NCBI GenBank assembly: GCA_002269645.1
Contig: NIVC01000672.1
Location: 372,001 to 436,000, forward strand
From: Macrostomum lignano
Taxonomy: Eukaryota
Direction of reading: 5' to 3'
Length of the DNA stretch: 64,000 nt
Part shown: positions 6,166 through 48,877 of the stretch, one piece after another
Layout of the letters: the number at the start of each line of letters is the position of its first letter
Position numbering within the stretch: position 1 is the stretch's first letter
Made by a program: the position numbers and the translations under genes
Notes under the pieces: model-generated
Database searches by the model: none
What the model was told of the DNA's origin: nothing
What the model saw: only the letters and a program-made list of their open reading frames with translations

Positions 6166-9100
6166 ATGGCATCTTTAAATGCTGAATTCTATAAATTTAA
6201 TTCATGCATTAACCAACTACGCAGAATCTATAAAGAAACATTGACAGCTTTCTTGGATGCATCAAATTCAAGCTCTATTGATTTTCTGCACAGTGAATCA
6301 TCTGGGGCTTTAGTATCAGGTGAGTACTGGTACAGCTTTTACATTCAGCTATTTTTGTAGTGTAAAGTATATTTCATATGTTAGCACTCTTAGGTCAATC
6401 TTTTTGCAGCTTTTCCTATAATACAGGTTACTACTTGGCCAGTTTTATTAAATGGTTGGGAAATATTTAGTATTGATATATATATATAGACATCACATTT
6501 TTAGTATATAGGACATATGTTAGGACATTTTTATTTAGTATCCAAAGTGTTAGTTTAAAAACTCATAAAGAACCATCTGAAAATCATAAGGTGTCTTAGT
6601 TTTAACTAAATTTTCATAAAATTAATAAAAATACTTATTTTAGTAATTTTATTAAATTAACTATTCTTAGTAAAATTTCACATCTAAATAAGATTAGACA
6701 ATTCTAATATAAGCTTAAGATTCAAAAAGCACTATAGTCATCAGAATCCAATTGGCAGAATCAAATTAAGAGCTAATTCAATTTTCACAAACTGTCTTGT
6801 TTGAATTTGTCTAGATCGGCCACCTCGAGAGATTTTTGCTCGCCTAGAGCCACCAGTTGAGGCTGAACTGCAGCAGCTGCTGCACCAGCCACCCACGCTA
6901 CTCGTGTTTGGCCAGAGCCGTTGCGCCCGCAACCATCTGGCCAATCACCTGCTGCACTGCTGCCTCCTGCCTTTGGGGACATCGGCAAATGAAGGTTCGA
7001 ACTGCTGGCCTTTGATGACTCGGTTTTAATAGCAGCATCCTAGTTTCATAATGCATATGAGCATTTACTGGGTGGTAATCTTTGCTTCCAAAATCTTTCT
7101 GTATGTTCCTCACGTTTGAAAATTTGAAAATTTGCCTGCCACTGACAGCGCATTTTTAAAAGTTTTGAGCTGCAGTTTGGGATGTGCAAAGGCTCTGGGA
7201 GATTGCCGAGTTTAATTCACCATCCGCCCCGCCAACCGCCTGTCCAGACGACGCGGACGGCCCCGCCTGGCGCCCCGTGCGGCTCCGCTTCTCCGCCGCC
7301 TCGCCGACCGCCGCCACCGCTGCGGCGCTTGACGAGGCCGACCTTCGCCTGCCGCCCGACTGCGGCGACTCTACCGCCGCGGTGCTGGAGGTGCCGCTTA
7401 ATCACCCGCTGCTGCGGGACGGCGCCGAACTGCTGGTGGCCGGCGACGGAGACTTCACAGCCGCCGTGCCGCCGCTGATTTGCCTCTGCGCCCTGCCGCG
7501 CGAGCGCTGCCTGACGCCCGCCGAGGCGCGCGACCTCCAGCAGCTGCTGTCGACCGCGGCGGCTCCCTCCGCAGTCCTGATCGCGCGGCCGCCGCCACCG
7601 CCTGCAGAGTCGGCGAATCCCCAGTTGGCCGAGCGGCTGCGCGGCCAGCTGCGGGAGCTCGGCCTCCCTGACACCGCCGAAGCCAAGGAGGAGGCGGCGA
7701 CGGCGGCCTTGGGTACCTCGGCGACCTCCGAGCTGCTGGACGACTTTCAGGCGGGCTGGCCGCGACTTGTTGCCTTCGTTCGGCGGGCCCTGCAGCGGAT
7801 TCTGGTGCGGGCGGCCGTCCTGCTGAACCAGGCCCACTGCGCCGCCCTCAACAACTTCATCCTGCTGGCCTTTGACCTGTCACGGTGCGAGCCCGGCTGA
7901 TGCTCCTAACCCTACTGACCCGCTGTTCCTGACCCACTGACTCGCTGTTCCTGACCCACTAACTTGCTGTTCCTGACCCACTGACTCGTTGTTCCTGACC
8001 CACTGACTTGCTGTTCCTGACCCACTGACTCGCTGTTCCTGACCCAATGAACCCTGTTCTTGACCCACTGACCGGCTGTTCCTGACCCACTGACTCGCTG
8101 TTCCTGACCCAATGAACCTTGTTCTTGACCCACTGACCGGCTGTTCCTGACCCACTGACTCGCTGTTCCTGACCCAATAAACCTTGTTATTGACCCACTA
8201 ACCGGCTGTTCCTGACCCACTGAGTCGCTGTTCCTGACCCAATGAACTCTGTTCTTGACCCACTGACCGGCTGTTCCTGACCCACTGACTCGTTGTTCCT
8301 GACGCACCAACTCGCAGCTCATGACCCACCGAACCCGCCCCGACCCATAGCGACCTGATGGTGACGCCCCGCAAGATTCAGTTCGCCCAGCGGCAGGAGC
8401 AGCAGCTGTTCGACTCGCTGTGCGAGGTGGCAGACAGCAAGCAGGAGGAGATGCGGCAGCTGGTGGCGGCCACCCTGTCGGGGATGCGGGAGAGCCTGCT
8501 GACCGCGGCGGCCGAGCACCAGTTTGCAGGCGGCGGCTCAGACGGCGACTGCCGACGGTGCGAATTCGAGATTCGGGAGCTGGTGATGTCCCGGCTCGGG
8601 GTGGCTATCGGCGAGCAGCTGGTCCGCTCCGTCAGCCTCTTCAGGGACGCCTACGCGGGCACGCTGACCCGCTGTCTCGAGGGCCTCGAGGACGGCGACG
8701 GCTGCGGCGACTGCAGCGCCACGGAGGCCCTGCGGCGAATCATCAGCGCAGCCTACCAGGTGGAGGTCACGGCGCGCTCCGGGTCCTCCTATGCGCGCTC
8801 GTTTAGAGACCTGCTCAGGGAGGTGAGCATCTCTGAGGGCGAGACCGCCTGCCGACCTTCGCTGTGTCTGTCCTGACTGGCTGTGTCTGTCCTGACTGGC
8901 TGTGTCTGTCCTGACTGTCTGTGTCTGTCCTGACTGTCTGTGTCTGTGCTGACTGACTGTGTCTGTCCTGACTGACTGTGTCTGTCCTGACTGTCTGTGT
9001 CTGTCTTGACTGGCTGTGTCTGTCCTGACTGGCTGTGTCTGTCCTGACTGGCTGTGTCTGTCCTGACTGGCTGTGTCTGTCCTGACTGGCTGTGTCTGTC

Positions 9101-12100
9101 CTGACTGGCTGTGTCTGTCCTGACTGGCTGTGTCTGTCCTGACTGGCTGTGTCTGTCCTGACTGGCTGTGTCTGTCCTGACTGTCTCTGTCTGTCCTGAC
9201 TGTCTCTGTCTGTCCAGACTGTCTATCTCCTGACTGGCTGTGTCTGTCCTGACTGGCTGTGTCTGTCCTGACTGTCTGTGTCTGTCCTGACTGTCTGTGT
9301 CTGTCCAGACTGTCTATCTCCTGACTGGCTGTGTCTGTCCTGACTGGCTGTGTCTGTCCTGACTGTCTGTGTCTGTCCTGACTGTCTATCTCCTGACTGG
9401 CTGTGTCTGTCCTGACTGGCTGTGTCTGTCCTGACTGGCTGTGTCTGTCCTGACTGGCTGTGTCTGTCCTGACTGTCTCTGTCTGTCCTGACTGGCTGTG
9501 TCTGTCCTGACTGTCTGTGTCTGTCCTGACTGTCTATCTCCTGACTGGCTGTGTCTGTCCTGACTGGCTGTGTCTGTCCTAACTGTCTGTGTCTGTCCTG
9601 ACTGTCTGTGTCTGTCCTGACTGTCTGTGTCTCTCCTGACTGGCTGTCTGTCTTGACTGGCTGTGTCTGTCCTAACTGTCTGTGTCTGTCCTGACTGGCT
9701 GTGTCTGTCCTGACTGGCTGTATCTGTCCTGACTGACTGTGTCTGTCCTGACTGGCTCCTGATCTGCCCCTTCAGCTGGCCGGCTCCCTGCCGTGGGCAT
9801 CGGCGCCCAAGCTGGACGCGAGCTGGCGCCGCCGCGTGGCTTCGGACATGCTGGACGGGCTGTCCGACCAGCGCCTGGCCCGGCACATGTGCGCCCACCT
9901 GTCCGAGCGCATCCGGGCCGCGCACGAGGCCTTCCTGGTTGCCATGCGGCGGCTCGAGGAGCGAAAATCCGCCCGGACCCGCGCGTGCGAAGAGCAGCGC
10001 GACCGGATCCGCTGCCGCCACGCGCCCCGCATCGCCCGCCTGGCGCTGGAGTCCGCCTCTGTCCGGGACATGACTCTCTATGGTGAGCTGAGACATGACT
10101 CTCTATGGTGAGCTGGGACATGACTCTATGGTGAGCTGGGACATGACTCTCTATGGTGAGCTGGGACATGACTCTATGGTGAGCTGGGACATGACTCTCT
10201 ATGGTGAGCTGGGACATGACTCTATGGTGAGCTGGGACATGACTCTCTATGGTGAGCTGGGACATGACTCTCTATGGTGAGCTGGGACATGACTCTCTAT
10301 GGTGAGCTGGGACATGACTCTCTATGGTGAGCTGGGACATGACTCTATGGTGAGCTGGGACATGACTCTATGGTGAGCTGGGACATGACTCTCTATGGTG
10401 AGCTGGGACATGACTCTCTATGGTGAGCTGGGACATGACTCTCTATGGTGAGCTGGGACATGACTCTATGGTGAGCTGGGACATGACTCTATGGTGAGCT
10501 GGGACATGACTCTCTATGGTGAGCTGGGACATGACTCTATGGTGAGCTGGGACATGACTATATGGTGAGCTGGGACATGACTCTCTATGGTAAGCTGGGA
10601 CATGACTCTATGGTGAGCTGGGACATGACTCTCTATGGTGAGCTGGGACATGACTCTCTATGGTGAGCTGGGACATGACTCTCTATGGTGAGCTGGGACA
10701 TGACTCTATGGTGAGCTGGGACATGACTCTATGGTGAGCTGGGACATGACTCTATGGTGAGCTGGGACATGACTCTCTATGGTGAGCTGGGACATGACTC
10801 TATGGTGAGCTGGGACATGACTCTCTATGGTGAGCTGGGACATGACTCTATGGTGAGCTGGGACATGACTCTATGGTGAGCTGGGACATGACTCTATGGT
10901 GAGCTGGGACATGACTCTATGGTGAGCTGGGACATGACTCTATGGTGAGCTGGGACATGACTCTCTATGGTGAGCTGGGCCTTAGTAACACATGCCGAAA
11001 TCGAACCCCTTCTTACCCTCAGGCATGCCGCAGTTCTCCCGCGAGATCGGGCGCGGCCAGTACGGCATTGTGTACAGCTGCGACTCCTGGGGCGGCCGCA
11101 GCCCCGTGGCCATCAAGTCGGTGGTGCCGCCGGATGACAAGCACTGGAATGACCTGGCATTGGAGTTCTATTACACCCAGTGAGCTCGTGTGACTCTGTG
11201 TGAGCTTCTGTGACTCTATGTTAGCTTCTCTGACTCTGTGTGAGCTTCTGTAATTGTGTGAGCCTCTGTAACTCTGTTTGAGCTCGTGTGAATCTTTGAG
11301 CTCGTGTGACTGTTTGAGCTCGTGTGAATCTGTGTGAGCTCATGTGACTCTGTGTTAGCTCATATGACTCTGTGTGAGCTCATGTGACTCTGTGTTAGCT
11401 CATATGACTCTGTGTGAGCTCATGTGACTCTGTGTTAGCTCATATGACTCTGTGTGAGCTCATGTGACTCTGTGTTAGCTCATATGACTCTGTGTGAGCT
11501 CATGTGACTCTGTGTTAGCTCATATGACTCTGTGTGAGCTCATGTGACTCTGTGTTAGCTCTGTGTGAGCTCTGTGTGAGCTCATGTGGCTGTGTGTGAG
11601 CTTGTGACTCTTTGTGAGCTCCTGTGACTGTGACCTATGTGACTCTTTGTGAGCTTCTGTGACTTTTTGTGAGCTCTTGTGACTTTGTGTGACCTCATGT
11701 GACTGCAGTCTATACAGTATTTCATATAGTAGTGTTCCAGATTATCCGCTACACAGCCGGGGTAACCGTGAATTATCATAATTATTTATTTCATTCTTTT
11801 CTCGCAGTAGAATTGTCATTTTGTGCTAAATGCGGATGAATCCCCAAGAAGTCAGATTCCGCGCCCCATCGCACAATTTATGGTCCCCTTCGTCTCCGAC
11901 ACGCCGCCCGGCCACCCCAAGGCAGCTGCCTGAGCACGCCAGAGTCGCGCGCATCCTCGGCTGCGCCATCGACAGGCGGCTGGCGGAGCCGGCGGTGCTG
12001 CTGGCGATGGCCCGCCTGCCCCGCGACCTGCACGTGGCCCTGGGCCGGGGCCTGGCCTGGACTGACAGGTGGCGGCCCCGAGCCGGACAGATTTGCATGT

Positions 12101-14653
12101 CCCAACCAGCCTACTGATTGGCTGGCAATATCAGTAGCGAGTAACGGGGCTTAAATGGGAAAATCCTCGGGAGCAATAAATAAATTGCTTGCTTTGATGC
12201 GGCTGTTTCGTTTGGTTGCGGCTGAGGTTGAGGGGCCGAGACGCTTCGTTTCTTAGAAAATATTTGAAAACTCAATTTAAGTTTCTTAGAAAATATTTGA
12301 AAACTCAATTTAAGTTTCTTAGAAAATATTTGAAAACTCAATTTACGTTTCTTAGAAAATATTTGAAGGCTCGATTTACGCTTAAGATTAATTGCAGAGA
12401 TATCAAACCTTTAAAGTAATCTTTCTGCTGGTACAAATATGCAGCTAAGACAGCTTAAGTCTTTCTAAGAAACGAACGTCTGACCCAGTCACTCAGCCAG
12501 TGAAGGCCGCCAGTTGCTAATCAGTGCCTCGCATTTGCGCAGGCAGCTGCCGCCTCACGAGCGCATCGTCCCCGTGCTGGGCGTCGTCACCAACTATGCC
12601 TATGGCGGCGGCGGGGTCGGCAGCGGCGACGGCGGCCTCACTGACTCCGAGATCTGCGTGCTCGGCGCCTCAGCCGCAGCCTCGCCGGAGATTCTCATCA
12701 TCTCGGAGCTGATGGGCTGCGACCTGCACCGCGCCATTCAGTTCGGCTCGCTCAGCTTCGCTGCCAGGTGACACCGCAGTGCCACCGACAGCCCGTGCCG
12801 CTCCTCATGATTGCCGCTCCCGCATGTCCCCGCGATTGCCAATACTGCCTGCTTGCATCCCATCCTGATCCCATCCTGATCCCATCCTGATCCCATCCTG
12901 ATCCCATCCTGATCCCATCCTGATCCCATCCTGATCCCATCCTGATCCCATCCTGATCCCATCCTGATCCCATCCTGATCCCATCCTGATCCCATCCTGA
13001 TCCCATCCTGATCCCATCCTGATTCCACCCTGCTACCATCATCAGCCTCCCACCTTGATCATATCCTCAGCCTCTCACCCTGATCCCATCCTGATCCCAT
13101 CCTGATCCCATCCTGATTCCACCCTGCTACCATCATCAGCCTCCCACCTTGATCATATCCTCAGCCTCTCACCCTGATCCCATCCTGATCCCATCCTGAT
13201 CCCATCCTAATCCCACCCTGATACCACCCCGATCCCATCCTGATCTCACTCTGATCCCATCCTCAGCTACCCACTCTGATCCCATCCTGATCCGACCCTG
13301 ATTCCACCCTGATCCCATCCTGAGCTTCCCACCTTGATCCCATCCTCAGCATCCCACCCTGATCATATCCTCAGCCTCTCACCCTGACCCCATCCTGATC
13401 CCACCCTGATCCCATCCTCAGCCTCCCACTCTGATCCCATCCTGATCCCACCCTGATCCCATCCTGATCCCACCCTGATCCCATCCTGATCCCACCCTGA
13501 TCCCATCCTGATCCCACCCTGATCCCATCCTGATCCCATCCTGATCCCATCATGATCCCATCCTGTTCCCACCCTGATCCATCCTGATTCCACCCTGATC
13601 CCATCCTGATCCCATCCTCAGCCATCGCACAAATTCCCCTCCAGACTACAGGTGGCCTGCGACGTGGTGGAGGGCATCCGGTTCCTGCACAGCCGCGGCC
13701 TGGTGCACCGAGACGTCAAGCTGAAGAACGTGCTGCTGGACAGGCGCAGCCGCGCCAAGCTGACGGACCTCGGCTTCTGCAAGCCGCACGCCATGATGAG
13801 CGGCAGCATCGTGGGCACCCCGATCCACATGCCGCCCGAGCTGTTCACCGGCAACTATGACTCATCGGTGCGCCTGCGGCTTTGTGTTGGAGTTGTTTGG
13901 GGTGCTGACCCAGCTATGACTCATCGGTGCGCCTGCGGATTTGTGTTGGAATTGTTTGGGGTGCTGACCCTGCTATGACTCATCGGTGCGCCTGCGGCTT
14001 TGTGCTGGAGTTGTTTGGGGTGCTGACCCTTGATGCGGGACTGATTTTCTTGTACAAATCAGCTCCATATCTGGCACAGTCAGCTCCATATCTGGCACAA
14101 TCAGCTCCATATCTAGCACAATCAGCTCCATATCTGGCACAATCAGCTCCATATCTGGCACAATCAGCTCCATATCTGGCACAATCAGCTCCATATCTGG
14201 CACAATCAGCTCCATATCTGGCACAGTCAGCTCCATATCTGGCACAATCAGCTCCATATCTGGCACAATCAGCTCCATATCTCACACAGTCATGCTGCAA
14301 TTCCAAGCACTCCCCAACCGCAGGTGGATGTGTACGCCTTTGGCATCCTGTTCTGGTATGTGTGCGCCGACACGGTGCGCCTGCCGCACAACTTCGAGCA
14401 GTGCAGCAGCAAGGACGCCCTGTGGAGCTCCGTGAAGCGCGGCGTGCGGCCGGAGCGGCTCCCGGCCTTCACCGACCAGTGCTGGGACCTCATGCGGCAC
14501 TGCTGGGACGGCCTTCCCGACCGCCGCCCGCTACCCGGCGACCTCCTGCCGACCCTGCAGGCCCTGCTGGCAGAGGCTCGGGCCGCCCCCGCCTCCTCCG
14601 CCTGCCAGGCCGGCGGCCCGCCATCCGGGCACCTCGTCAGCGACTTGCTGTGA
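6166..14653 (+). CDS. DSTYK: Dual serine/threonine and tyrosine protein kinase (Dusty/RIPK5), 9 coding exons, about 918 aa
   Basis: Exons with GT/AG boundaries and consistent phases: 6166-6319, 6815-6994, 7176-7884, 8351-8822, 9776-10082, 11023-11179, 12543-12767, 13645-13867, 14324-14653 (2757 nt). The translation matches DSTYK as I recall it: [130 protein letters not shown]. Confidence 0.95.
7913..8310. repeat. 22-bp minisatellite (CTGTTCCTGACCCACTGACTCG) in DSTYK intron 3
   Basis: Tandem units are directly visible, with higher-order variants. Confidence 0.9.
8861..9755. repeat. 19-bp minisatellite (TGTGTCTGTCCTGACTGGC) in DSTYK intron 4
   Basis: Tandem units are directly visible. Confidence 0.95.
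10063..10979 (+). repeat. 25/23-bp minisatellite (GGGACATGACTCT[CT]ATGGTGAGCT) built from the DSTYK exon 5/intron 5 junction
   Basis: 38 ATG|GT(G/A)AG copies counted from 10083 to 10970; the first is the true donor. Confidence 0.95.
11180..11700. repeat. Degenerate 20-bp minisatellite (GTGAGCTCATGTGACTCTGT) starting at the intron 6 donor
   Basis: Tandem units visible; a 40-bp higher-order unit is present at 11330-11560. Confidence 0.85.
11922..12068 (+). CDS. DSTYK: Alternative DSTYK exon 7a (paralog of exon 7b, 12543-12767), kinase subdomains IV-VIa
   Basis: GC-rich 147-nt block flanked by ccccaag| and |gtggcg, phase 2/2 like exon 7b. Encodes [49 protein letters not shown], collinear with exon 7b and with the equivalent DSTYK segment. 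Confidence 0.75.
12247..12380. repeat. 33-bp AT-rich tandem repeat, about 4 copies, between exons 7a and 7b
   Basis: GTTTCTTAGAAAATATTTGAAAACTCAATTTAA repeated. Confidence 0.9.
12856..13620. repeat. 11-bp minisatellite (GATCCCATCCT) in DSTYK intron 7
   Basis: Tandem units are directly visible. Confidence 0.95.
13855..14030 (+). repeat. 59-bp repeat x3 containing the exon 8 3' end and donor (CTATGACTCATCG|GTGCGC)
   Basis: Donor copies at 13868, 13927 and 13986. Confidence 0.9.
14057..14290. repeat. 21-bp minisatellite (TCAGCTCCATATCTGGCACAA) in DSTYK intron 8
   Basis: About 11 tandem units. Confidence 0.95.
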
Positions 14654-14689
14654 CGCCCGGGCTGAACTGGACACCCCATCATCTGGATA

Positions 14690-15130
14690 TCTCAGTCCCG
14701 CACCTGGATTCTTCAGTCTCGCAACTGGATTCCTCAGTCCCGCACCTGGATCTCTCAGTCCCGCCCCTGGATTCCTCAGTCCCGCACCTGGATCCCTCAG
14801 TCCCGCACCTGGATCCCTCAGTCCCGCACCTGGATTCCTCAGTCCCGCACCTGGCTTCCTCAGTCCCGCACCTGGATGCCTTAGTCCCGCACCTGGATCT
14901 CTCAGTCTTGCACCTGGATCCCTCAGTCCCGCACCTGGATCTCTCTGTCCCGCACCTGGATTCCTCAGTCCGGCACCTGGATCCCTCAGTCCCGCACCTG
15001 GATCCCTCAGTCCCGCACCTGGATTCCTCAGTCCGGCACCTGGATCCCTCAGTCCCGCACCTGGATCCCTCAGTCCCGCACCTGGATTCCTCAGTCCGGC
15101 ACCTGGATCCCTCAGTCCCGCACCTGGATT
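14690..15130. repeat. 21-bp minisatellite (TCAGTCCCGCACCTGGATCCC) just 3' of the DSTYK stop
   Basis: About 21 tandem units. Confidence 0.95.
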
Positions 15131-15572
15131 CCTGTGCTCAGCCAGTGTCAATCAGCACTACTCCTACTCAACTGTGTCTGCTTATTCCGCAACCCTCAGC
15201 GCCTGCTGCTTTCATTCGGTTACCTGCGTTTCTGTAAAATTGATAAACTCTTTTTGTACCCGTTGCTGCTTCTGCTGAGTCCCCATTAAATCTCTAGTGG
15301 GGTGTTTTATTGCGGTGCATCATGGCTTTGCTTACCTGGCAGGTGCATGGCATCGCAGCATTTAGATGTTACTGCTGGAACTCATTGATCACTTTAAAAC
15401 TGGATGAGAATGCCGCCACTGTGAAATAAAATACTCGCCACTTTGAAAGTATATTTTTTCCACAGATTTTCATACGGATCATCATCTCACCTGAGTTCCA
15501 ACTCATAACGAGTATGCTCAAGAACGATTGGCATGCTTTTTTTAATTATTCAATTTTCATTGTCATTACTAT

Positions 15573-15930
15573 GTGAGTGAGTGAGTGAGTGAGTGAGTGA
15601 GTGAGTGAGTGAGTGAGTGAGTGAGTGAGTGAGTGAGTGAGTAAGTGAGTGAGTGAGTGAGTGAGTGAGTGAGTGAGTGAGTGAGTGAGTGAGTGAGTGA
15701 GTGAGTGAGTGAGTGAGTGAGTGAGTGAGTGAATGAGTGAGTGAGTGAATGAGTGAGTGAGTGAGTGAGTGAGTGAGTGAGTGAGTGAATGAGTGAGTGA
15801 GTGAGTGAATGAGTGAGTGAGTGAGTGAGTGAATGAGTGAGTGAGTGAGTGAGTGAGTGAGTGAGTGAATGAGTGAGTGAGTGAGTGAGTAAGTGAGTGA
15901 GTGAGTGCCTGCGTGCGTGAGTGAGTGAGT
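15573..15930. repeat. (GAGT)n microsatellite
   Basis: Directly visible. Confidence 0.97.
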
Positions 15931-17169
15931 GCACTCGGTGACTTCGGGGACTCACTCAGCCAATAAGTTTAATTGAAACGGGGCACAATCAAGAACTACT
16001 AGACTGTTATATACAGTGGTCCTTGGGCACAATCCCAAGATTGGGGCGGGTCTGGGCCAAAGACATTTCGCAGATGAGCAATTCATGATATTCCTTCATC
16101 CATGGCTTTACGATTAGCACGTACGGTGGAATCTGGTTTAACATGTTGAGCTCGTGTAGCTATATTTAATTGGTTCCACGGAAGCTCTGCGATTGGCTCT
16201 CCACGTTAGCTCGGTACATTTTGGTTTGACTCACTTTTGGCTAATTAAAATTGTTGAAAAGATACATAAAAGCGCTGATTCATATCGATTTTTGGCTAGA
16301 TGGCTAAACTGGAATGTTTAATATATATTTAATAGTTTCATATAGTTAATTAGGGAAGTTTTCAGGGACAGCAAGACCTGCAGATTTAGGCAGAAGCAAA
16401 TTATAAAGTTGTTGATAAAAGAAAGATAATCAGCATGCTAAGTAAAGAGCTTAAACAAAAAATACGCAATTTTCAGATAATTGTAATAGTTTTTATTATA
16501 ACAGACAGCAAAATAAAATTTTTAATAATTAAAGGTTTTAATAGATTTATGTTTATAAAAAATTTAACGCAAGAGAAAACTATGAAAAAGGGACAAATAA
16601 ATAAACTTAGCATCACTGCAAACATAGTTTTAAATCGACAGAAAACTAAAATCTAATAACTAGGTTTCAATAGATATCCAGATATCCAGACAGACAAAAC
16701 AAATCTGATACAAAAATTACTTTAAAGCAAACAAAAAATATTGATAAATAACGCACAGTTTCAATATATATGTTTTAAAACAATTTTTGCAAGAGCAAGC
16801 TAAAAGGTGATTAACAAAACTTAGCATATCCAATTAAAAACATTTTTTAAGAGACAGCAAACTTAAAGTTATTATAGATCAGTAATTTAAAAACATCACA
16901 CGCACAAAAAGTCCACACGACAGAAACGGAGGCTGCATCACATGTAACTGCAACCTTAATACATCTGAAGGATTAATTGTTGGTAAAACTCCACCCACTG
17001 CCAGCACTTACTTGTACATCTGTGGAAACGCCTGCTTGGAGCCTCAAGCAAGATGCACAGCTGTTTTTAATTATTTTTTGAGTCGAGAGGGAATTTAACT
17101 ACCCATAACTGCTAAAGGCCTGTGGTCTCTTGGTTTGTTTAATTGTTAAGTTTTAAGAATGATGATTAA

Positions 17170-18375
17170 TTTAATGATGTTGAGTGGGACTGGGAAGATT
17201 AATGCTGAGTGGGGAGTCGGGGACTGAGGGAAATGATGCTGAGTGGCACTGAGGGAAATGATGCTGAGTGGCACTGAGGGGAATGATGCTGAGTGATACT
17301 GAAGGGAATGATGCTGAGTGATACTGAAGGGAATGATGCTGAGTGGCACTGAGGAGAATGATGCTGAGTGATACTGAGGGGAATGATGCTGAGTGATACT
17401 GAGGGAAATGATGCTGAGTGACACTGAGGGGAATGATGCTGAGTGATACTGAAGGGAATGATGCTGAGTGGCACTGAGGGGAATGATGCTGAGTGGCACT
17501 GAGGGGAATGATGCTGAGTGATACTGAAGGGAATGATGCTGAGTGGCACTGAGGGGAATGATGCTGAGTGGCACTGAGGGGAATGATGCTGAGTGATACT
17601 GAAGGGAATGATGCTGAGTGGCACTGAGGGGAATAATGCTGAGTGGCACTGAGGGGAATGATGCTGAGTGATACTGAAGGGAATGATGCTGAGTGACACT
17701 GAGGGGAATGATGCTGAGTGGCACTGAGGGGAATGATGCTGAGTGGCATTGAGGGGAATGATGCTGAGTGATACTGAGGGGAATGATGCTGAGTGGCACT
17801 GAGGGGAATGATGCTGAGTGGCACTGAGGGGAATGATGCTGAGTGGCACTGAGGGGAATGATGCTGAGTGGCACTGAGGGGAATGATGCTGAGTGATACT
17901 GAGGGAAATGATGCAGAGTGACACTGAGGGGAATGATGCTGAGTGGCACTGAGGGGAATGATGCTGAGTGGCACTGAGGGGAATGATGCTGAGTGATACT
18001 GAAGGGAATGATGCTGAGTGGCACTGAGGGGAATGATGCTGAGTGGCACTGAGGGGAATGATGCTGAGTGATACTGAGGGGAATGATGCTGAGTGACACT
18101 GAGGGGAATGATGCTGAGTGGCACTGAGGGGAATGATGCTGAGTGGCATTGAGGGGAATGATGCTGAGTGATACTGAAGGGAATGATGCTGAGTGACACT
18201 GAGGGGAATGATGCTGAGTGGCACTGAGGGGAATGATGCTGAGTGGCATTGAGGGGAATGATGCTGAGTGATACTGAGGGGAATGATGCTGAGTGATACT
18301 GAGGGGAATGATGCTGAGTGATACTAAGGGGAATGATGCTGAGTGATACTGAGGGGAATGATGCTGAGTGACACC
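17170..18375. repeat. 25-bp minisatellite (GAGGGGAATGATGCTGAGTGGCACT)
   Basis: Directly visible; the long ORFs it generates are repeat artefacts. Confidence 0.97.
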
Positions 18376-18721
18376 TAAATATTTGATATACTACATTTAT
18401 ATTTATATTTATATTTATATTTCGATATAAATATTACATATTTCCCTAAACATTCGACTTTAACTAAAACGAACCAAAACTCGCTTCGCTTGAAACCCCA
18501 AGGCGAGAGAAAACTCAAATCCAAAATTTGAAGTCGCAAAAGCAATGTTAGCAAGTTTTCAAATCGCATATGGATTTAAATAATGAGAATTTCACATAAC
18601 TTAATGTCAGTGCGACAGCAACAAGTCGATCTTGTCAGGTACAACTTGCTCATGTACCATTCCTGAAGCAATTTAAGCTACTCGGCTTTCTTTTCTTTTT
18701 CTTTTCCTGGTTCTGCTGCTG

Positions 18722-20269
18722 CTATTGGCTCTGCTGTTGTTGCTGAACTGCTTTACCAGCTGCTCTCTGCTCAGCCGGAGCCAGGAAAAACTTTTTGTCC
18801 ATTCGCACCAGCCAGGAGGACACCTGCCGCTTATCGGCTGAATTTTTGTGCGCCATTTCGTAATTGACTCGCTCGATCATGGACACGACGTCTTCTTTAT
18901 TACCGAACTGCTGGAACACCGAGCATAGCGAAGTGATGAATCGAGACCCCTTTGACCCCTCTCTCGCACTCGTCTCTAGTGGCACAGTCGAGTGCGCCAC
19001 AATGACGTCCTCGTATTCAGGCAGAGGTTCGCGCTCGTTTTTCTCGTCCGACACACCGACGCTATGGTTGCGACACACCTGGAAAATCAGCAGCTTCGGT
19101 TTACCGGTTCTTTTTCCGGCAAACTTTTGTAGAATATCTTTTTCTTTTGCATCATCATCGTCGCATCCGTACAGGTATCCTACTATACCGTGAGTCATTA
19201 GTACAAGAATAGCTGCGTCATCTTTTAACTCCAAATAACGTATTTCTTTCCCAGTCAGATTGGTTCTGATTGAAACACTGAATCCCAATTCAGTGAACAC
19301 TTTTAACAGTCTCTGAGTGTCTTTCTCGGAACCCAAGCGATTGCCATGTCTGCCGAATATGAGATTGTTGATGATGAGCACGCGGGTGCTGGGATCGGCA
19401 GTTGAATACCTTTGTTCCTTACCTGTCTGCGTCAGCTTCCACAGTGCCTCGCTGCTGCTTTCTCTCTCTTCTCTACTAGAGCACTTCGGCACGGGTATTT
19501 CCGGCTCGATTTTGATTTCACAGTGAAATTTAGCCAAGCCGCAGTTTTTGCAAACTTTCTTCTCTAACAATTTGTCTTTGCAGTGGACGCAATCTTTGCA
19601 TTTCACGCAGATCAGCGGTGTGTGAGTTTCTCTCATGCCTTTGCACGTCTTCTTGCAAGTGCAGTCAGTGGCTGCCAAATTGATAGTACAAGAACACAGC
19701 GTGACTGGCTCTTTTGGCTTTTTTGACTCTTCTGATTCTTTAAAATTATCGAGGAGTTGATTAATTAACTGAAAATGATTCTCAGTTTTAATCCAAACGT
19801 CATGTTCGTCAATTTTTCTAAAGTTGTAAATCGTTGAGCCTGGCTCTGATTGGCTTTGACTGGTTCGTGGTGCCTCTCTCTGATTGGCTGGTCTCTGATC
19901 TCTAATCTCTGATTGTACCTCGTAGCTAGCGACTACAACTGCATAATTTGAAATGTCCGGTGCCTGGATTTCTCCATATTCAGCGCGCACTTCCCATCCA
20001 TTTGTCTCCAGAGCAATGCGGAGTCCATCAATTTTCTTCTGCTTCTGCGTTTCGTACGTTGAATTCCCATCCTTCTTGACAAGGATGAGAGCCGTTGGAG
20101 GTTCCTTGGGTGCTAAAATTTTAAACAGAATTACTGTAGATGCGAATCAACAAAGTTCTGAATAAAATCAAATTTTGCCTTACGTTTGGTGTCTGATTTC
20201 TTTGATGGCACTGAAATGAAATCAACAGGAAGGTTTAAAATTAAAAAAATATATATATTTATGCTTACT
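18722..20269 (-). CDS. Caspase-like protease type A, copy 1 (A1): N-terminal alpha/beta domain + Cys/His-rich linker + caspase domain with intact dyad, about 472 aa
   Basis: Caspase motifs RVLIINN, NRLGSEKD, LFTELGFSV-like (KVFTELGFSV), ILVLMTHG (His), KPKLLIFQVCR (Cys), TSAR..GSRFI. Proposed model: 20269 (the A of ATG), 20184-20210, 18722-20112, with canonical GT-AG introns; N-terminus MPSKKSDTKPPKEPPTALILV. Confidence 0.85.
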
Positions 20270-20394
20270 AGAGTAGATATAGGAAATATTTGTTGGAAAT
20301 GTGAGATAATTCAATTTTATCTGGCTAACTTTTATCTGTTTCTACATGTTAAACATTCGTTTTTTAATAAATCTTCAACCTCCAATTCTGGCTC

Positions 20395-20567
20395 ATGAAA
20401 TATTTTCGACTATTCGCATGACGCGCGTATGACAGCTACTGTTGAATTCTATGTGCGTAGCAGCTGTGATTTTATGAGTTCGTAAGTGATTTGATCTGTA
20501 CTTATATGGGCGCTATTCTGAGTACCTTGTCCAAAGAAATGTTACGATATACAATACACTAACATGT
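20395..20567. promoter_or_regulatory. Conserved non-coding block immediately downstream of each B gene (also about 39950-40135 and about 56255-56445)
   Basis: About 180 bp of near-identical sequence in three copies. It could be the B 3' UTR, the promoter of the next gene, or an intercistronic element; function is inferred only. Confidence 0.35.
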
Positions 20568-22261
20568 TCAGTTCATGTAAAAGTCTATCCTGAACAGAAC
20601 ACAATGTATACATGACAGTTCAACTGTAAATTTACCGTTTTTCTCGTCAAGAAAGAATTCATCAGTTGTCTGCACAATCCAGTACGGGAGAAGCAGATTA
20701 TTTTCAACATTTTGATCCGCAAAGTTCGCGCAAAGTTTGTTTGAAAAGCCGTTCTTGACGATGCTGTTGATGGGGCAGATCATTGAAGCCACATCTGTGT
20801 TGCCGGCACCGAAGTAAATTGCTGAGCACAGAGCGAGCACGAAGCGGCTACCCAGGGGGGAACGACCATCAGCAGGGGTTGATTCAGATCTGACTATGAT
20901 CAGACCGCTTTGTTTGTGAAAGTGCAAGTCTGGAGTTGGACCATCAGACGCTGAATCAGTAACTTCCCCTGCAGTTCGATCATCCATGGTAATCACATCT
21001 AAGCGCTCTCGCAGATGAACAACAACCAGCCTGTGCGAGTTGAAAAAACAACTGCCTTGGCTAATTTTAGTGAGCAGTGTGTTAATTTGAGCTTCTGGGT
21101 CTTTGGTCTTTTCAGCAAGGATTACTACCACATAGGAGGGATTGACATCCTTTGGCGGCGGTTCGAATTTGATCTCATAATTACCTAAATCAACTCCAGC
21201 TTCAGTTTTGCACTGACTATCAGGTGATTTGTAGTTGGCGTGCTCAAGTGCATCTTGCAGATTTGCAACGTCCATCCTTGCACTTCTGCCCAAATCAGAT
21301 TTGTCATCGTCTAGCGATTTGCTCACAAGAATGAGAGCGCGATTCTTGTGTGGTTTGTAAGGTGGTTTTCTGTTTTCTGTGTTTTCAGAAGTGTTTTCTG
21401 TTTTGATATATTTTGGGATTTTTTCTTTCAGACGATTCCTCGAAAACGTAAACCCGGCGCCGCCAGGAATATAGTAGAATTTTCTACTATCGATTTTGTC
21501 TTTAGAGCTCCTACTGAAATTTATAACTGTGTTTTGAAGATTTTCGTTTTCAATTAACATGCCTGCGATCTCGTTTAGCTCACTTTCATCTGTGTCTTCT
21601 TCGTCTTTTTTACTCGTACATAGGAAATTCACGTTTAGTAATATTGCTTGTTGATTCTTTTTGTCACGCAGCTTCTCCTTCAGATCCTTGTTTCCACAAA
21701 CAATCAGAAGTCTTTCCAGCTGACCATTTTCGCCACTATCGAATGCCTCGAATAGAGCCTTAAGTTGATCATCGAGTTCCGAACTGTCAGAATGCACTAC
21801 AAGAACTGCTTGTAGTTTAACTGACTTCTCAGCAGTGAGCAGATTCGTACATTCATCAATGTTATTGCATTCTTTCAACTGAAAATCGCAGTCCTCCAGG
21901 TACTTTTTGAAGTCTGTATTCGATGTGATATTCAAAAAGAATGCCTTCCTGTCTGAAATGCAATTAAAAAAGATTTGCGTTAAAAAGTTTGCGTTTGGGG
22001 CTGAGTATCGGAGCAGTAACGCATCCGGTTCTGCACAAAACACCGTTGCCCCAATCATTCAAGCACATTCTCACCTGTTGAAGTTGTGCTGCTATGTCTG
22101 CAATCCGTAACTGCAATTCAGATTGTTGAATTGGTTGTTAGAATTAGATAGAGGCCGCCAGGACCGGCTAATAGAGAGTTGGGTTGAAGCGTACGTAGCT
22201 CCTCAGCAGGGTCATCAGTGATATACTGTATTATGCATCCATGCTGATGAAAAGCCATCAT
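20568..22261 (-). CDS. Pseudocaspase type B, copy 1 (B1): N-terminal alpha/beta domain + caspase-fold domain lacking the His/Cys dyad, about 495 aa
   Basis: NRALILVS, RSARMDVANL, VVVILAEK (no HG), RLVVVHLRER (no QACR), GSRFVLALC, PYWIVQTTDEFF. Exons 22195-22261, 22075-22110 and 20568-21952; the same exon structure and phases are present in all three B copies. Confidence 0.8.
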
Positions 22262-23074
22262 CAAGCTATTCGTCTCCATACGCAGACTAGAGCTAGTAGT
22301 AATAACTTTAACAGTTATTCAAAATATTTCCATGGCTATGGCGGCGTACCAGAATTAATTTTTACAAAATAGCAACCGCACAAAATTGCTTCTAAATTTG
22401 TCCTACATTGATGACACAGGAACAGTGTTGTAATAGAATGCACTGCTGCTGACACACATTCACTAGAGTAGGCTATGGTTCTACCAGCTAATTACGTAAT
22501 ATAAGCTCTCTATCCTTCCCTGTGTTCCTGACAAGAGTTCATTACACGAAGAGACAATTATCGTCAGCTAAGCTTAAAGCAGGCTTTGCTCGACTTTTGC
22601 TCAACTTCTTGTGAGCTGAATATAACTTCCGGGGCTCCTGCGCCGGAAGGACCTTCTATGCTCTTTGATGCCGTTGAAAAAATGAATCTGCCTTTAGCGT
22701 TCAAAACACAATAGGCGTTGCTTGGATCGAGACAGCCAAACTGCAATAAGCTTTATTTTTCCCCGGAACAGAACCCTCTCTCCTGCGCAAGCACTGCACT
22801 GCTCAAAAATATCTGTAGGAGAGACCCATGCAGCTCAGCCTTGCAGGTTATGGAAACGCGGGAGAGCGCCACCACTGACTGCTGTTGGACCTCTTCACCC
22901 ATTTCTCTCTACCAGGCCCTCTTACTGGACACGCGCTCACGTCACTTCTTAGAAGCACGTCTCCACTAACGAGGTTCAAAAGTCTACTTCTGTTTTCAAC
23001 TTCTCTAACGCTAAAATTTTTATTTATTGAATACTTGTACAAGGAGTAGGTTAGGTTTAAGGCGTGCATGAGAG

Positions 23075-28930: not shown

Positions 28931-29808
28931 TAGATACTTTCTCAGAAATAAAAAGAACGCAATGGAGCAGCAGATTCTGTGGAATAAATAATGATTTAAC
29001 AACAATCGGTTCTACACACGAACTTATGATAAAAAAGTATTATATAACGAAGAAACTGATTTATAGATTTTTATTATTGAAATTAGTTTTCTTTGATTAT
29101 AGATAATCATAAATAGAAAGCAGAATAGCAAAGACTCAAACCAGCACCCGTGCAGTAAAGTACATATTTGAAATGAGTAGCTACCAGCGTATTTTGAATC
29201 AAAAGACAAAATAAAGCAGCTCCGACACCTTATTAGGTTTCTTCACGATTCTTTAATAAAATTGAACTTTGAATCCCTTGAAAAAATTGTCAGAATCGAA
29301 AAATTGGTGGGGATCGCGCGGTGCTTCATTCCCTGCTACCTGCTTAGAGACGATTCCTCGAGCACAGCACAGATTTAGTGCTTCCAGCAACAAAGGCAAT
29401 TAAAACACGAACTTGGCACAGAAACGAAGCAGGCCTCCGTCAATAAAAAAGTGTTTCGAACTTCAATCTACGAGTATATTTGGCTTAAAGCAAACTTAAC
29501 ACGAAAAAGAAAAAAAAAATTCACTGCGAGAAGGCAAAGTGAGCCGCCAGTAGAGCGCGACGGGGGTTTAAAAACACCCCTGCCACCCAAGGGGGGGCAG
29601 GCGGCGATGTACAATCAACGCGCTGGGCACTAAAGCCGGTTTGTGCACTTTCGCCGCACAAACCAGTCCATTAGTGCTTCCAGCAACAAAGGCAATTAAA
29701 ACACGAACTTGGCACAGAAACGAAGCAGGCCTCCAAAGCCAAACACAACGGGGGATAAGAGCAGCAGCTAGGCATTGAGCAAAAAACAAATCAGCGGGAA
29801 GACCACCG

Positions 29809-30855
29809 TCAAAAATGAGCACTAAGGGCGGAAGAAAAATGCAGAGAGGCCGCAGCAGTGGCAACACCCGAGCGGGGCAAGTAGCGCTCCACCGCCGAAC
29901 TCTTCCAGTCGCCGATCCGCTGGATCTCCGCCACCGGCAGGCCCATGCGAGCTGCCCAGGTGGCTCCACCTCGACGCAGGCTGTGAGCCGAGTAGAGCTT
30001 GCCGCCACACCCAGCCCTCTGCAGCTTAGAGTCAAGAAACCGGTCCAAGTCCCGAGCAGCTAGATGGCGCCGCTGTCCATTGCGATCGATGAAGGACCAG
30101 AGTGGCGCCTCGGCCATCGCCAGCTTGTTGACACACAGATGTCGGCGAATCGCCACTACCGGGCAGAGCGCGGGGCAGGCGGGGAACTTCGGAAGCAGGA
30201 CGTGGTGGACTCGATCACGGAACTGAATAGTCTTGCCAAAGTCCACGCTTAAGAGGAGGCCGCAACGGTGAGGTGTCAGATTCTGCACCTTCATCCCACT
30301 ACCCAACTGAGGCGACGATAGAAGGAGTGATGATTTTCGCAGCATTCCCCACCAGGCAGTGATGGTGACCGCCCAGCAGGCCAGTTGCCGATTGTCGCCC
30401 TTGTCAACCAGAGACCAAAGCTTTTGCAGCACCGACGGAGACATTGGTAGCTTCTGGTTGACCTGAAGCCCCAGCGCTCGCTTGCAGCCCCGCAGCAGAT
30501 GCTGGTTGAGGGTGTGCTTCGTCAGGTCCTGAGCGCCGTTCAGCCGAAACCACAGTGAAAGCGAGCTGACATGACCGCGAACGCTACTGTAGGCTCGCAG
30601 GCGCGTGCCCGTGAGGCCAGCCAGGTAGTTTAGCAGCGTGGACACAGTACACCCGGCGGGGTCGAGTCCCTTGGCTGAGCAGTACGCGCGCCAGGACCGC
30701 ACGTGTGAGCTGATGGCGCTTTTCGAGCGGGCCGCGTAGGAGGAACCGAGTAGTTCACGGGCTCGGTGGCTGAGGTGGTCTGGCGCAGTCTGGCGACCTG
30801 AAAACGGAGAAAAGCGGATGTGGCAGCAGAAAGCGTGTGCCGGGAAAGCGAGCAA
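29809..30855 (-). CDS. Ngaro ORF3, tyrosine recombinase
   Basis: WGMLRKSSL (R), GKTIQ (K), HSLRRGGAT (HxxR), GDWKSSAVERY (W, Y); overlaps the ORF2 3' end. Confidence 0.92.
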   Translation of the reverse strand: MLAFPAHAFCCHIRFSPFSGRQTAPDHLSHRARELLGSSYAARSKSAISSHVRSWRAYCSAKGLDPAGCTVSTLLNYLAGLTGTRLRAYSSVRGHVSSLSLWFRLNGAQDLTKHTLNQHLLRGCKRALGLQVNQKLPMSPSVLQKLWSLVDKGDNRQLACWAVTITAWWGMLRKSSLLLSSPQLGSGMKVQNLTPHRCGLLLSVDFGKTIQFRDRVHHVLLPKFPACPALCPVVAIRRHLCVNKLAMAEAPLWSFIDRNGQRRHLAARDLDRFLDSKLQRAGCGGKLYSAHSLRRGGATWAARMGLPVAEIQRIGDWKSSAVERYLPRSGVATAAASLHFSSALSAHF

Positions 30856-32450
30856 TTGGTGAGACGCACCAATGAGCCATAAAAGCGCAGCAAAAAATTC
30901 AACAACTGACTGCCCTCGTGCAGCCGAGACGCGGCGTCAGCAAAAATTTGAAACGGCCCTGGCACATGGTAAGCACGCAGCTGAATGTTCTGACGAATGC
31001 AAAGCAGCGCCACCGTCTGCAACAGCCTCAACACCAGAGGGCACTTGGAGACCCCATTGTTGATAATACAGCACGCTGCCATATTATCGCAGTAGATGCA
31101 CAGCCGACAGTTGTGCAGGCGGTCCCGCCACGACAGCAACGCCATCAGAGGCATCACAGCCTCCTTGTAATTGATAGGCAGATCCCGAAAAACAGCATCC
31201 GCGTCGAGATCCCAATTAACGTAGCGCCAGTCACTCACGCCCCCCGGCAACCGCAGCACGGCAGCGCCGCCCACCAGGCAGGCGTCCGACTCGATCGCGG
31301 CATCGAAGTCGCCATTGAACCAGAGAGTCTTCCACCTTTGAGCTAGCAGAGCACACTTCCACCAGCGCAGCTGACTACGCAGGGCCGCATCCACCTCATC
31401 TTGCTGACCGACGGCCAAATTGTTAGAGCGCGAAATCAGGTCCTGAAGAAAGGGGCGACCGCATTCGATCACCTGCGAAGCCCACACCAGCCTGCCGATG
31501 ATCTGCTGTAAACTTTGCTTGCTGATGCGATCCTTGGCAGCAGCATCGTCCAGTTGCTCTAAAAGTTTCTCCACTTTCTCGTCTGAAAGCCGCTTCAGGC
31601 CCTTGACGGTGTCGAGCTCCACACCGAGAAACGTCATCCTTTGCGAAGGCCGCTGACACTTCGTCCAATTCACGGTGAAGCCCAGTCTGGTCATCAGAGA
31701 CGTCAACACATTAAAGAAGGCCTCGCACTCGTTTTGCAAACCGCAAAAGGCAAAATCGTCCAGATAGGCCTCAGTATTGACGAAGCCGCGGTGCACCATC
31801 ATCAACTTGACCGCCTCGCTGAGATGATAGAAAGCCGTGACGGAAGCAGCAGCACCAAATGGCAGGCGCGTGTCCACCATGTAGGTGTCGCAAGCATCGC
31901 TACCTAGCCGAAACTTCAAACCGGTAAACTTTTGGTCGTCAGGATGGATCCCACATGAACGATAGGCTTCGCTTAGATCGACCTTGCACATAAAGTAATT
32001 CTTCTTAAGCCTCTTAGCAAAGTTCTGGACACAGGTGAAACGCAGTCTCTGCTCGCTCTCGTAAGCGGAGTTGACAGACTTCCCTTGCGGCCGGCTGCAG
32101 TCATGGATTAAGCGAACGCCACCGTTGGACTTCGGCAGCGCACCAAGGGCGCTGACTATGCGAGGTTTGTCACCAGCAGCACAGAGACGATAACGACCGA
32201 GACGAAGCTCATTAGCAATCTGACGCGCAACTCTGTCATGGTGCTTAAAAACCGATGAGTAGTTTGCCACTTCAACCAGCTCGTTGCCATGCATCTGACG
32301 ATTGGTGATGCGAAAGCCACTAGCAACGCCATCAAGGATAAAAGCCATCCGACCGGGCGGGAGATCCAGCTTGGACAACTCCGCCTGCCACTGGGCCAGA
32401 TTGAGATCAGAGGATAAAACAGGAGGAATAAAATTCGCGCTATGATCGAG
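30630..32450 (-). CDS. Ngaro ORF2, reverse transcriptase + RNase H
   Basis: RLIHDCSRP, KVDLSEAY, RLPFG, YLDDF, TFLGVELD, IESDAC, INYKE, YCDN, FADAASR. The frame is open from the codon right after the ORF1 stop. Confidence 0.92.
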   Translation of the reverse strand, partial: LDHSANFIPPVLSSDLNLAQWQAELSKLDLPPGRMAFILDGVASGFRITNRQMHGNELVEVANYSSVFKHHDRVARQIANELRLGRYRLCAAGDKPRIVSALGALPKSNGGVRLIHDCSRPQGKSVNSAYESEQRLRFTCVQNFAKRLKKNYFMCKVDLSEAYRSCGIHPDDQKFTGLKFRLGSDACDTYMVDTRLPFGAAASVTAFYHLSEAVKLMMVHRGFVNTEAYLDDFAFCGLQNECEAFFNVLTSLMTRLGFTVNWTKCQRPSQRMTFLGVELDTVKGLKRLSDEKVEKLLEQLDDAAAKDRISKQSLQQIIGRLVWASQVIECGRPFLQDLISRSNNLAVGQQDEVDAALRSQLRWWKCALLAQRWKTLWFNGDFDAAIESDACLVGGAAVLRLPGGVSDWRYVNWDLDADAVFRDLPINYKEAVMPLMALLSWRDRLHNCRLCIYCDNMAACCIINNGVSKCPLVLRLLQTVALLCIRQNIQLRAYHVPGPFQIFADAASRLHEGSQLLNFLLRFYGSLVRLTNCSLSRHTLSAATSAFLRFQVARLRQTTSATEPVNYSVPPTRPARKAPSAHTCGPGARTAQPRDSTPPGVLCPRC

Positions 32451-46798: not shown

Positions 46799-47166
46799 TA
46801 ATGGAAGGCAGCCAGTGCCGCAATTGTTGATTGCAGCCCCGCATGTCCCTGCGATTGCCAATACTGCCTGCTTGCATCCCATCCTGATCCCATCCTGATC
46901 CCGTCATGATCCCATCCTGATCCCATCCTCAGCCATCGCACACCTCCCCCTTTCAGACTTCAGGTGGCCTGCGACGTGGTGGAGGGCATCCGGTTCCTGC
47001 ACAGCCGCGGCCTGGTGCACCGAGACGTCAAGCTGAAGAACGTGCTGCTGGACAGGCGCAGCCGCGCCAAGCTGACGGACCTCGGCTTCTGCAAGCCGCA
47101 CGCCATGATGAGCGGCAGCATCGTGGGCACCCCGATCCACATGCCGCCCGAGCTGTTCACCGGCAA

Positions 47167-47470
47167 CTATGACTCATCGGTGCGCCTGCGGCTTTGTGTT
47201 GGAGTTGTTTGGGGTGCTGACCCAGCTATGACTCATCGGTGCGCCTGCGGCTTTGTGCTGGAGTTTTTTAGGGTGCTGACCCAGCTATGACTCATCGGTG
47301 CGCCTGCGGCTTTGTGTTGGAGTTGTTTGGGGTGCTGACCCAGCTATGACTCATCGGTGCGCCTGCGGATTTGTGTTGGAGTTGTTTGGGGTGCTGACCC
47401 AGCTATGACTCATCGGGGCGCCTGCGGATTCGTTTGTGTTGGAATTGTTTGGGGTGCTTACCCTTGATCC
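47167..47470 (+). repeat. 59-bp exon/donor repeat x5
   Basis: Donors at 47180, 47239, 47298 and 47357; the fifth copy has lost its GT. Confidence 0.9.
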
Positions 47471-47489
47471 GGGACTGATTTTCTTGTAC

Positions 47490-48480: not shown

Positions 48481-48877
48481 CATGCTGCAATTCCAAGCAC
48501 TCCTCAACCGCAGGTGGATGTGTACGCCTTCGGCATCCTGTTCTGGTACGTGTGCGCCGACACGGTGCGCCTGCCGCACAACTTCGAGAAGTGCAGCAGC
48601 AAGGACGCCCTGTGGAGCTCCGTGAAGCGCGGCGTGCGGCCGGAGCGGCTCCCGGCCTTCACCGACCAGTGCTGGGACCTCATGCGGCACTGCTGGGACG
48701 GCCTTCCCGACCGCCGCCCGCTGCCTGGCGACCTCCTGCCGACCCTGCAGGCCCTGCTGGCAGAGGCTCGGGCCGCCCCCGCCTCCCCCGCCTGCCAGGC
48801 CGGCGGCCCGCCATCCGGGCACCTCGTCAGCGACTTGCTGTGACGCCCGGGCTGAACTGGACACCCCATCATCTGGA

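Follow-up and report, generated by a model that had tools for sequence, protein, structure and literature searches.

Candidate mutually exclusive exons for the gatekeeper and hinge of a DSTYK-like kinase in the flatworm Macrostomum lignano

The stretch of DNA analysed here, referred to throughout as the window, comprises 64,000 nucleotides (nt) of the genome of Macrostomum lignano (GenBank assembly GCA_002269645.1, contig NIVC01000672.1, positions 372,001 to 436,000, forward strand). It carries a complete DSTYK-like kinase gene on the + strand, at ~6800-14653, in which one exon of the kinase domain is present as two divergent tandem copies, designated 7a and 7b. The window is eukaryotic in character, its exons being GC-rich and its introns AT-rich or satellite-filled. 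The exons of the gene were placed by tblastn and by alignment of motifs. The N-terminal non-kinase region gave tblastn matches at 7334-7885, 8352-8825 and 9773-10081 (E-values 5e-5 to 6e-29), the queries being the M. lignano models P0042 and P0084 and an approximate human DSTYK sequence. The catalytic motifs are all intact. The part of the gene that concerns us is composed of the following features.

9776-10082, + strand: exon 5, pre-kinase region, with its donor within the first unit of a 23-nt minisatellite (placed from tblastn to DSTYK proteins, the sequence and its tandem repeats)
11023-11179, + strand: exon 6, with the glycine loop GRGQYG, the β3 lysine (VAIK) and helix αC; ends in CA, phase 2; 100% identical to model P0046
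11922-12068, + strand: exon 7a, 147 nt, with β4, a short β4-β5 loop that lacks YxYGGG, β5 AVLLAM (Met gatekeeper), hinge and αD
12069-12542, + strand: intron between 7a and 7b, 474 nt, with no similarity to the other flanking introns
12543-12767, + strand: exon 7b, 225 nt, with β4, YAYGGGG and a Gly/Ser/Ala insert, β5 EILIIS (Ser gatekeeper), hinge ELM and αD
13645-13867, + strand: exon 8, with helix αE, the catalytic loop HRDVKLKN, the DLG motif and the activation segment (tblastn and motifs)
14324-14653, + strand: exon 9, the C-lobe up to the TGA stop (tblastn and motifs)

The top protein matches of this gene are DSTYK/RIPK5 proteins, with E-values down to 8e-117, and its exons 8 and 9 show much the same identity, ~70-75%, to DSTYKs from many phyla. 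M. lignano also has a second, more canonical DSTYK, represented by the models P0042, P0084 and P0109, which share ~78-93% identity with the window gene across exons 6, 8 and 9 and which, within the part that they resolve, carry the segment corresponding to exon 7 once and in canonical form (VIDYTYGSGPAVLLIMERLTRDLHAAIKQNLNWPGR). With at least one further, more canonical copy in the same species, the relationship to vertebrate DSTYK is not one-to-one, and the window gene is, as judged from these comparisons, a divergent M. lignano paralogue of DSTYK and not vertebrate DSTYK itself. The UniRef M. lignano 'DSTYK' model P0046 (174 amino acids, aa) matches exon 6, parts of 7b and exon 8 residue for residue, with frameshifted stretches in between of the sort seen in poor models; no record of P0046 was returned by an exact look-up in the assemblies. 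Its read-through tail, compared with window positions 13840-13975 and 47150-47290, mixes copy 1 (…ELFGVLTLL) and copy 2 (…EFFRVLTQL) of a segmental duplication described below, and this mixture suggests that at least one more near-identical copy or allele of the locus is present in the genome. PMC10468722 describes M. lignano as a hidden polyploid whose genome is difficult to assemble.

Exon 7a is bounded by ccccaag/GCAGCTGCC at its 5′ end and by GACAG/gtggcg at its 3′ end and encodes 48 residues plus (R), and exon 7b, bounded by tgcgcag/GCAGCTGCC and GCCAG/gtgaca, encodes 74 residues plus (R). Both frames are open and AG/GT-bounded, and both exons are flanked by phase-2 introns, the codons at the junctions being split in such a way that exon 6 supplies a terminal CA, either exon 7 an initial G and a terminal AG, and exon 8 an initial A. 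As 147 and 225 nt are both multiples of 3, the frame is kept with either, both or neither of the exons. The gap of 78 nt between their lengths is made up by an in-frame insert of ~25 codons in 7b and by 3-6 codons lost in 7a, all of them in the β4-β5 loop.

A profile built from the equivalent exon of 31 DSTYK orthologues (arthropods, molluscs, vertebrates and others) gave 43.3 bits for 7a and 35.9 bits for 7b, the maximum of 1000 shuffles being 6.1 and 8.5 bits respectively, and 16 of the 48 residues that align between the two exons are identical (33%; permutation p < 5e-5). The segment is single in 31/31 orthologues, where it is ~52-55 residues long and follows the pattern (S/T)IPEHERIVxIRGSVIDYSYGGGSSPAVLLIM(D/E)RLxRDLYxAIKxGLxWxxR; 7a and 7b are each ~45-50% identical to it. 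The second half of 7a (β5, hinge and αD) is almost intact with respect to the family consensus and its YxYGGG loop is lost; 7b retains the first half together with the YxYGGG motif, and its β5 and hinge are more divergent. Losses at conserved positions are thus complementary: 7a has suffered them in its first half, 7b in its second. The ~25-codon insert of 7b consists of Gly, Ser and Ala, lies in the β4-β5 loop and is encoded by a GGC-rich tract. Nearly all DSTYKs carry Met, as 7a does, at the position where 7b has Ser. By homology, 7a and 7b are tandem copies of one DSTYK exon, that encoding β4, the β4-β5 loop, β5, hinge and αD. An interpretation of the pair as collapsed alleles or homeologues was rejected, since their identity is merely 33%. 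The original prediction, made from the letters of the window, had described tandem homologous phase-2/2 exons; its coordinates, lengths, splice sites and translations for 7a and 7b agree with those given here, and the homology that it asserted lies far above chance in both the profile scores and the permutation p.

The duplication is not recent. Nucleotide identity between 7a and 7b is 0.52 at each codon position, and composition alone predicts 0.41 at position 3, which places synonymous sites close to saturation. Remnants of a duplication were sought in the flanking introns, where local alignments were no better than those of shuffles. Since the flanking introns are without similarity and third positions are near saturation, the exon duplication is old. 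The G+C content at third codon positions (GC3) amounts to 0.94 for 7a and to 0.88 for 7b, values that fall within the range of 0.87-0.95 spanned by the remaining exons of the gene; GC2 is near 0.5. Codon-usage log-odds were trained on the other exons of the gene, known exons being left out in turn; the in-frame values per codon were +0.73 for 7a and +0.80 for 7b, with known exons at +0.53 to +0.98, and they were negative off-frame and at most +0.16 in the adjoining GC-rich intron. In a simulation of neutral drift, a consensus-like exon with gene-specific codon usage was allowed to drift toward an intron-like GC of 0.60-0.70 until its protein identity had fallen to the observed level, and for either exon the open frame, the GC3 and the codon score actually seen were retained together with a probability of 0.0003-0.0015. 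The codon statistics and the simulation together indicate that 7a and 7b probably both evolved as coding sequence, and they make a copy dead from the start unlikely for either exon. We also note an ATG at 11830 that is in frame with 7a across its acceptor, leaving 95 codons open (11830-12114). It is probably no alternative start, and a truncated open reading frame (ORF) running from it into 7a was rejected on account of an upstream codon score of -0.27, which is non-coding.

Each isoform is compatible with a confidently predicted kinase fold. The AlphaFold2 model with 7a has a mean pLDDT (predicted local distance difference test) of 86.0, with 92-96 over the 7a segment, and places β4 at residues 64-70, β5 at 77-83 (AVLLAMA) and αD at 89-94. 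The model with 7b has a mean pLDDT of 83.8, with 94-98 in β5, hinge and αD; its β4 is the same as in the 7a model, the insert at 71-101 is disordered (pLDDT 42-64), β5 lies at 102-108 (EILIISE) and αD at 114-119. Both isoforms exceed the threshold of Pfam Pkinase, with 110-117 bits, and the 7a model matches solved structures of Tec, RET and FGFR-family kinases with TM (template modelling) scores of 0.70-0.77. Met82 of the 7a model and Ser107 of the 7b model share one position in β5, which on these models is the gatekeeper, because the β5 strands match and the residue that follows is Glu in most kinases. An ungapped HMMER alignment to BMX, tried for placing the gatekeeper, was dropped since it is out of register in the hinge. 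The models, which the original prediction had named among its checks, thus bear out its description of a near-canonical 7a with a Met gatekeeper, 7a being the nearer of the two to consensus in β5, hinge and αD, and of a 7b with a Ser gatekeeper and a Gly-rich insert.

From this evidence we propose, as the favoured reading and with moderate confidence, that an old tandem duplication gave rise to alternative and probably mutually exclusive exons, which yield isoforms with a Met and a Ser gatekeeper. In kinase architecture, inclusion of both exons would double the region from β4 to αD and omission of both would delete it, so that solely the two exclusive combinations give a kinase; as the fold holds one copy of the segment, 7a and 7b are most likely mutually exclusive alternatives. 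We infer that both exons are spliced into mRNA, that they exclude one another and that the ATP pockets of the products differ in function. According to this proposal, the exon for β4, the β4-β5 loop, β5, hinge and αD would have been duplicated in tandem long ago in a divergent paralogue, and both copies would have evolved since then as translated sequence. The 7a isoform would combine a Met gatekeeper and a near-canonical β5, hinge and αD with a shortened β4-β5 loop. The 7b isoform would have a Ser gatekeeper, an altered hinge (ELM), the canonical YxYGGG and a disordered loop insert of ~25 residues.

A possible means of enforcing the choice is offered by a predicted long-range RNA helix between the two acceptor regions, whose arms are the following.

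11921-11936, + strand: 5′ arm of the helix, consisting of the last intron base and the first 15 nt of 7a, and containing the palindrome GGCAGCTGCC
12536-12551, + strand: 3′ arm of the helix, consisting of the last 7 intron nt, including the CAG acceptor of 7b, and the first 9 nt of 7b

The start shared by 7a and 7b (G CAG CTG CC) forms, with the G of the acceptor, the 10-nt palindrome GGCAGCTGCC, and beyond it 5/6 further bases of the 7a exon are complementary to the 7b intron, the T of a rare CCT codon in 7a being paired with the A of the 7b CAG acceptor. The predicted helix (11921-11936/12536-12551) has 15/16 pairs and -30.4 kcal/mol, and in a fold of 761 nt the pair probability is 0.97 for 11921-11932/12540-12551. 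The duplex between the 7a and 7b acceptor windows reaches -34.5 kcal/mol, as compared with -21.0 for the best other acceptor pair in the gene and -29.1 for the best of 5000 shuffles. The modelling suggests that a helix between the acceptors may contribute to exclusivity: with 7a present in the transcript, its 5′ end would mask the 7b acceptor via the 16-bp helix, and 7a would then be joined to exon 8. The fuller claim, that mutually exclusive splicing switches between Met and a very small Ser gatekeeper, together with a change of hinge and loop, and that the 7a-7b acceptor helix enforces it, is put forward here only tentatively, as a doubtful though testable extension. The intron between the two exons also contains the following element.

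12220-12498, + strand: element with inverted repeats, resembling a miniature inverted-repeat transposable element (MITE), with arms at 12220-12259 and 12462-12498 and an AT-rich core of four 33-nt units

The window has a single copy of this MITE-like element, whose arms are imperfect and ~40 nt long and whose tandem unit of 33 nt is GTTTCTTAGAAAATATTTGAAAACTCAATTTAA; its predicted fold is a long hairpin.

A number of observations weigh against the proposal that 7a and 7b are mutually exclusive alternatives. Since both lengths are multiples of 3, the reading frame, and hence nonsense-mediated decay (NMD), cannot enforce exclusivity, and the intron of 474 nt between the two is too long for a steric mechanism. 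Set against random GC-rich exon windows, the helix stands no further out than the 1.5% tail, and it rests largely on the palindrome that arises from shared Gln-Leu-Pro codons. The columns conserved at 90% or more are kept at 14/19 in 7a and 12/20 in 7b, which is not significant for either exon. The ratio of non-synonymous to synonymous divergence (dN/dS) between the two is uninformative (NG86 dN 0.84 and dS 0.59; maximum-likelihood dS ~14, which is saturated), being unusable because sites are saturated and GC3 is strongly biased. The drift simulation is also compatible with one copy having been silenced recently. The splice sites of 7a, with an AAG acceptor and a GTGGCG donor, are the weakest in the gene, those of 7b being CAG and GTGACA and those of the other exons CAG or TAG acceptors with GTGAGC or GTGCGC donors; a weak-site pattern such as that of 7a is typical of a regulated or a minor exon. 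P0046, the sole public model for the locus, uses 7b and skips 7a. No protein with 7a was found among 5.8 billion clusters searched with the 7b isoform and with exon 6 + 7a + exon 8, and these protein-cluster searches returned no transcript-derived protein of the window gene.

The foremost alternative draws on the last of these points. It holds that only 7b is used and that 7a, a former alternative or the ancestral copy, is now silent or almost never spliced, a recently retired pseudo-exon. The weak acceptor and donor, the omission of 7a from the sole model and its absence from the searched databases all agree with such a course, as does the loss from 7a of a β4 Val and of the two invariant residues, Tyr and Gly, in the YxYGGG loop. 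However, 7a is open, has a GC3 of 0.94 and exon-like codons with a sharp drop in its flanks, a state that is very unlikely after long drift, and it outscores 7b on the DSTYK profile; the frameshifted and error-ridden P0046 is weak evidence either way. We consider this alternative unlikely on balance, and yet a serious contender.

The converse possibility is that only 7a is used, giving a near-canonical kinase, and that 7b is decaying, with its Gly-rich tract as a triplet-repeat expansion in non-functional DNA. It would explain why 7a is closer to consensus in β5, hinge and αD, why 7b replaces five residues that are conserved at 90% or more elsewhere (among them the gatekeeper Met and an Ala of β5), and why N-lobe identity to orthologues is 71% with 7a as opposed to ~60% with 7b, the insert of 7b being a low-complexity, GGC-rich tract. 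The splice sites of 7b are nevertheless the better ones (CAG and GTGACA), its 75 open codons, GC3 of 0.88 and codon score of +0.80 are unlikely under drift, the public model uses it, and the insert lies within a loop, where the model tolerates it as a disordered segment. Retention of 7a alone is accordingly judged improbable.

The surroundings of the exon pair bear on a further alternative. Minisatellites fill much of several introns, starting at or across splice donors (10065-10979, 11180-11704 and 13855-14030; also 9000-9757, 12857-13618, 14057-14282 and 14683-15133). The 23-nt unit contains the last bases of exon 5 and GTGAGC and is repeated ~38 times, the 20-nt unit opens with the exon 6 donor GTGAGC, and the 59-nt unit, repeated 3 times, includes the end of exon 8 and its donor; as the minisatellites span donors, donor sites are reiterated many times. 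An Rfam scan of the window gave no matches. The 3′ part of the gene also belongs to a tandem segmental duplication.

12789-22286, + strand: copy 1 of the tandem segmental duplication, with a left edge that lies 22 nt downstream of the 7b donor
46809-63998, + strand: copy 2 of the duplication, which runs off the window
46957-47179, + strand: exon 8′ in copy 2, with 1 synonymous difference from exon 8 in 223 nt
48514-48843, + strand: exon 9′ in copy 2, with 4 synonymous and 2 non-synonymous differences from exon 9 in 330 nt, the same TGA stop and an intact frame

The two copies are 82-96% identical, with 88-94.5% in the flanking non-coding DNA near the exons. In copy 2, exons 8′ and 9′ are intact and exons 1-7 are absent; a third copy of exon 7 upstream of exons 8′/9′ was sought in the window and none was found. 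Since exons 8′/9′ resemble exons 8/9 more closely than the non-coding DNA around them does, they are either under constraint, products of gene conversion, or the tail of a homeologue brought in by mis-assembly; a role as alternative 3′ exons is conceivable. Copy 2 also bears an apparently intact long interspersed nuclear element (LINE) at 57002-62410 (+), with ORFs of 549 aa, without a Pfam match, and of 874 aa, with reverse transcriptase and RNase H domains; parts of it are 79-96% identical to M. lignano proteins, and its closest named relatives include a chimeric 'ABC transporter' model. Elsewhere in the window, a DIRS-like retroelement at 29500-33800 (-) has three ORFs, which carry a SAP domain (32454-33515), a reverse transcriptase (30633-32450) and, at 29812-30936, a tyrosine-recombinase (phage-integrase-like) domain that falls just under the Pfam cutoff.

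According to this alternative, the paralogue or its assembled copy is non-functional, whether as a duplicate that is not expressed in a repeat-rich, hidden-polyploid genome or through partial mis-assembly of the region, and the exon pair has no effect on splicing. Such a state would fit the second exons 8-9 lacking exons 1-7, the introns filled with minisatellites seeded at donors, the hidden polyploidy and difficult assemblies described for the species in PMC10468722 and the lack of a transcript-derived protein in the protein searches. We nevertheless consider it the least probable of the three, since the recognised exons are all open, strongly codon-biased and DSTYK-homologous in both N-terminal and kinase regions, all catalytic motifs are intact, most differences between exons 8′/9′ and 8/9 are synonymous and their flanks are 88-94.5% identical, which points to constraint, and 7a and 7b, at 33% identity, are far too different for collapsed alleles or homeologues.

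Exons 7a and 7b as probable mutually exclusive alternatives can be set beside several known systems. The concept of substitutions by tandem exon duplication is reportedly owed to Kondrashov and Koonin and to Letunic and Bork. Substitutions of this kind, in the form of mutually exclusive exons, constitute a general class (PMC8373072, PMC9741552). The pair in the window resembles members of this class in that the two exons are adjacent, homologous and of the same phase, and in that either alone completes the domain and both or neither would break the fold. It differs in that the property which defines the class, exactly one exon per transcript, is a prediction for the window pair, and enforcement of exclusivity by frame or NMD is inapplicable to it, both lengths being multiples of 3. 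The closest known case is that of exons 7A and 7B of FYN (FynB/FynT), which are mutually exclusive, tandem-duplicated exons in a kinase (PMC9741552). Common to both genes are homologous tandem exons swapped within a kinase and covering part of the N-lobe and ATP-binding region, with isoforms that differ solely there. The pair of FYN, however, spans the linker between SH2 and kinase together with the beginning of the kinase domain, that of the window gene β4-β5, gatekeeper, hinge and αD; and the former is ancient, conserved and shown experimentally, whereas the latter is predicted, has lengths 78 nt apart and belongs to a lineage-specific flatworm paralogue.

With regard to the regulation of such pairs, docking and selector RNA structures are said to control mutually exclusive splicing in Drosophila Dscam and 14-3-3 zeta, and competing RNA structures reportedly do so for exons 7a/7b of human ATE1. 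The predicted long-range helix beside the alternative acceptors of the window gene (P = 0.97) is reminiscent of these cases, but Dscam and 14-3-3 zeta pair a docking site with selectors, whereas the predicted helix pairs two acceptor regions and is partly a by-product of shared codons. With canonical DSTYK, the window gene has in common its domain organisation and motifs, including (I/V)KLKN, DLG and the C-lobe; in contrast, canonical DSTYK has the segment once in the sequences compared (…IDYxYGGGxxPAVLLIM(D/E)RLxRDLY…) and the window gene has it twice. A search of the literature yielded no paper describing mutually exclusive exons of this kind for DSTYK, as the original prediction had supposed, and no description of a swap of gatekeeper and hinge by mutually exclusive exons.

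If only one of the two exons is used, the pair would be an ordinary relic of exon duplication. If both are spliced alternately, one gene would give rise to two kinases that share the catalytic core and the regulatory regions and differ in gatekeeper, hinge and αD. These elements set the size of the ATP pocket and the selectivity for inhibitors and nucleotide analogues. The case would then represent a natural, splice-encoded change in ATP-pocket size within a single kinase gene, gatekeeper and hinge being an unusual target for the class of tandem exon substitutions. As M. lignano is amenable to transgenesis, the exon pair is directly testable. It would also add an example of a dated exon duplication and of subsequent divergence in a recently polyploid flatworm.

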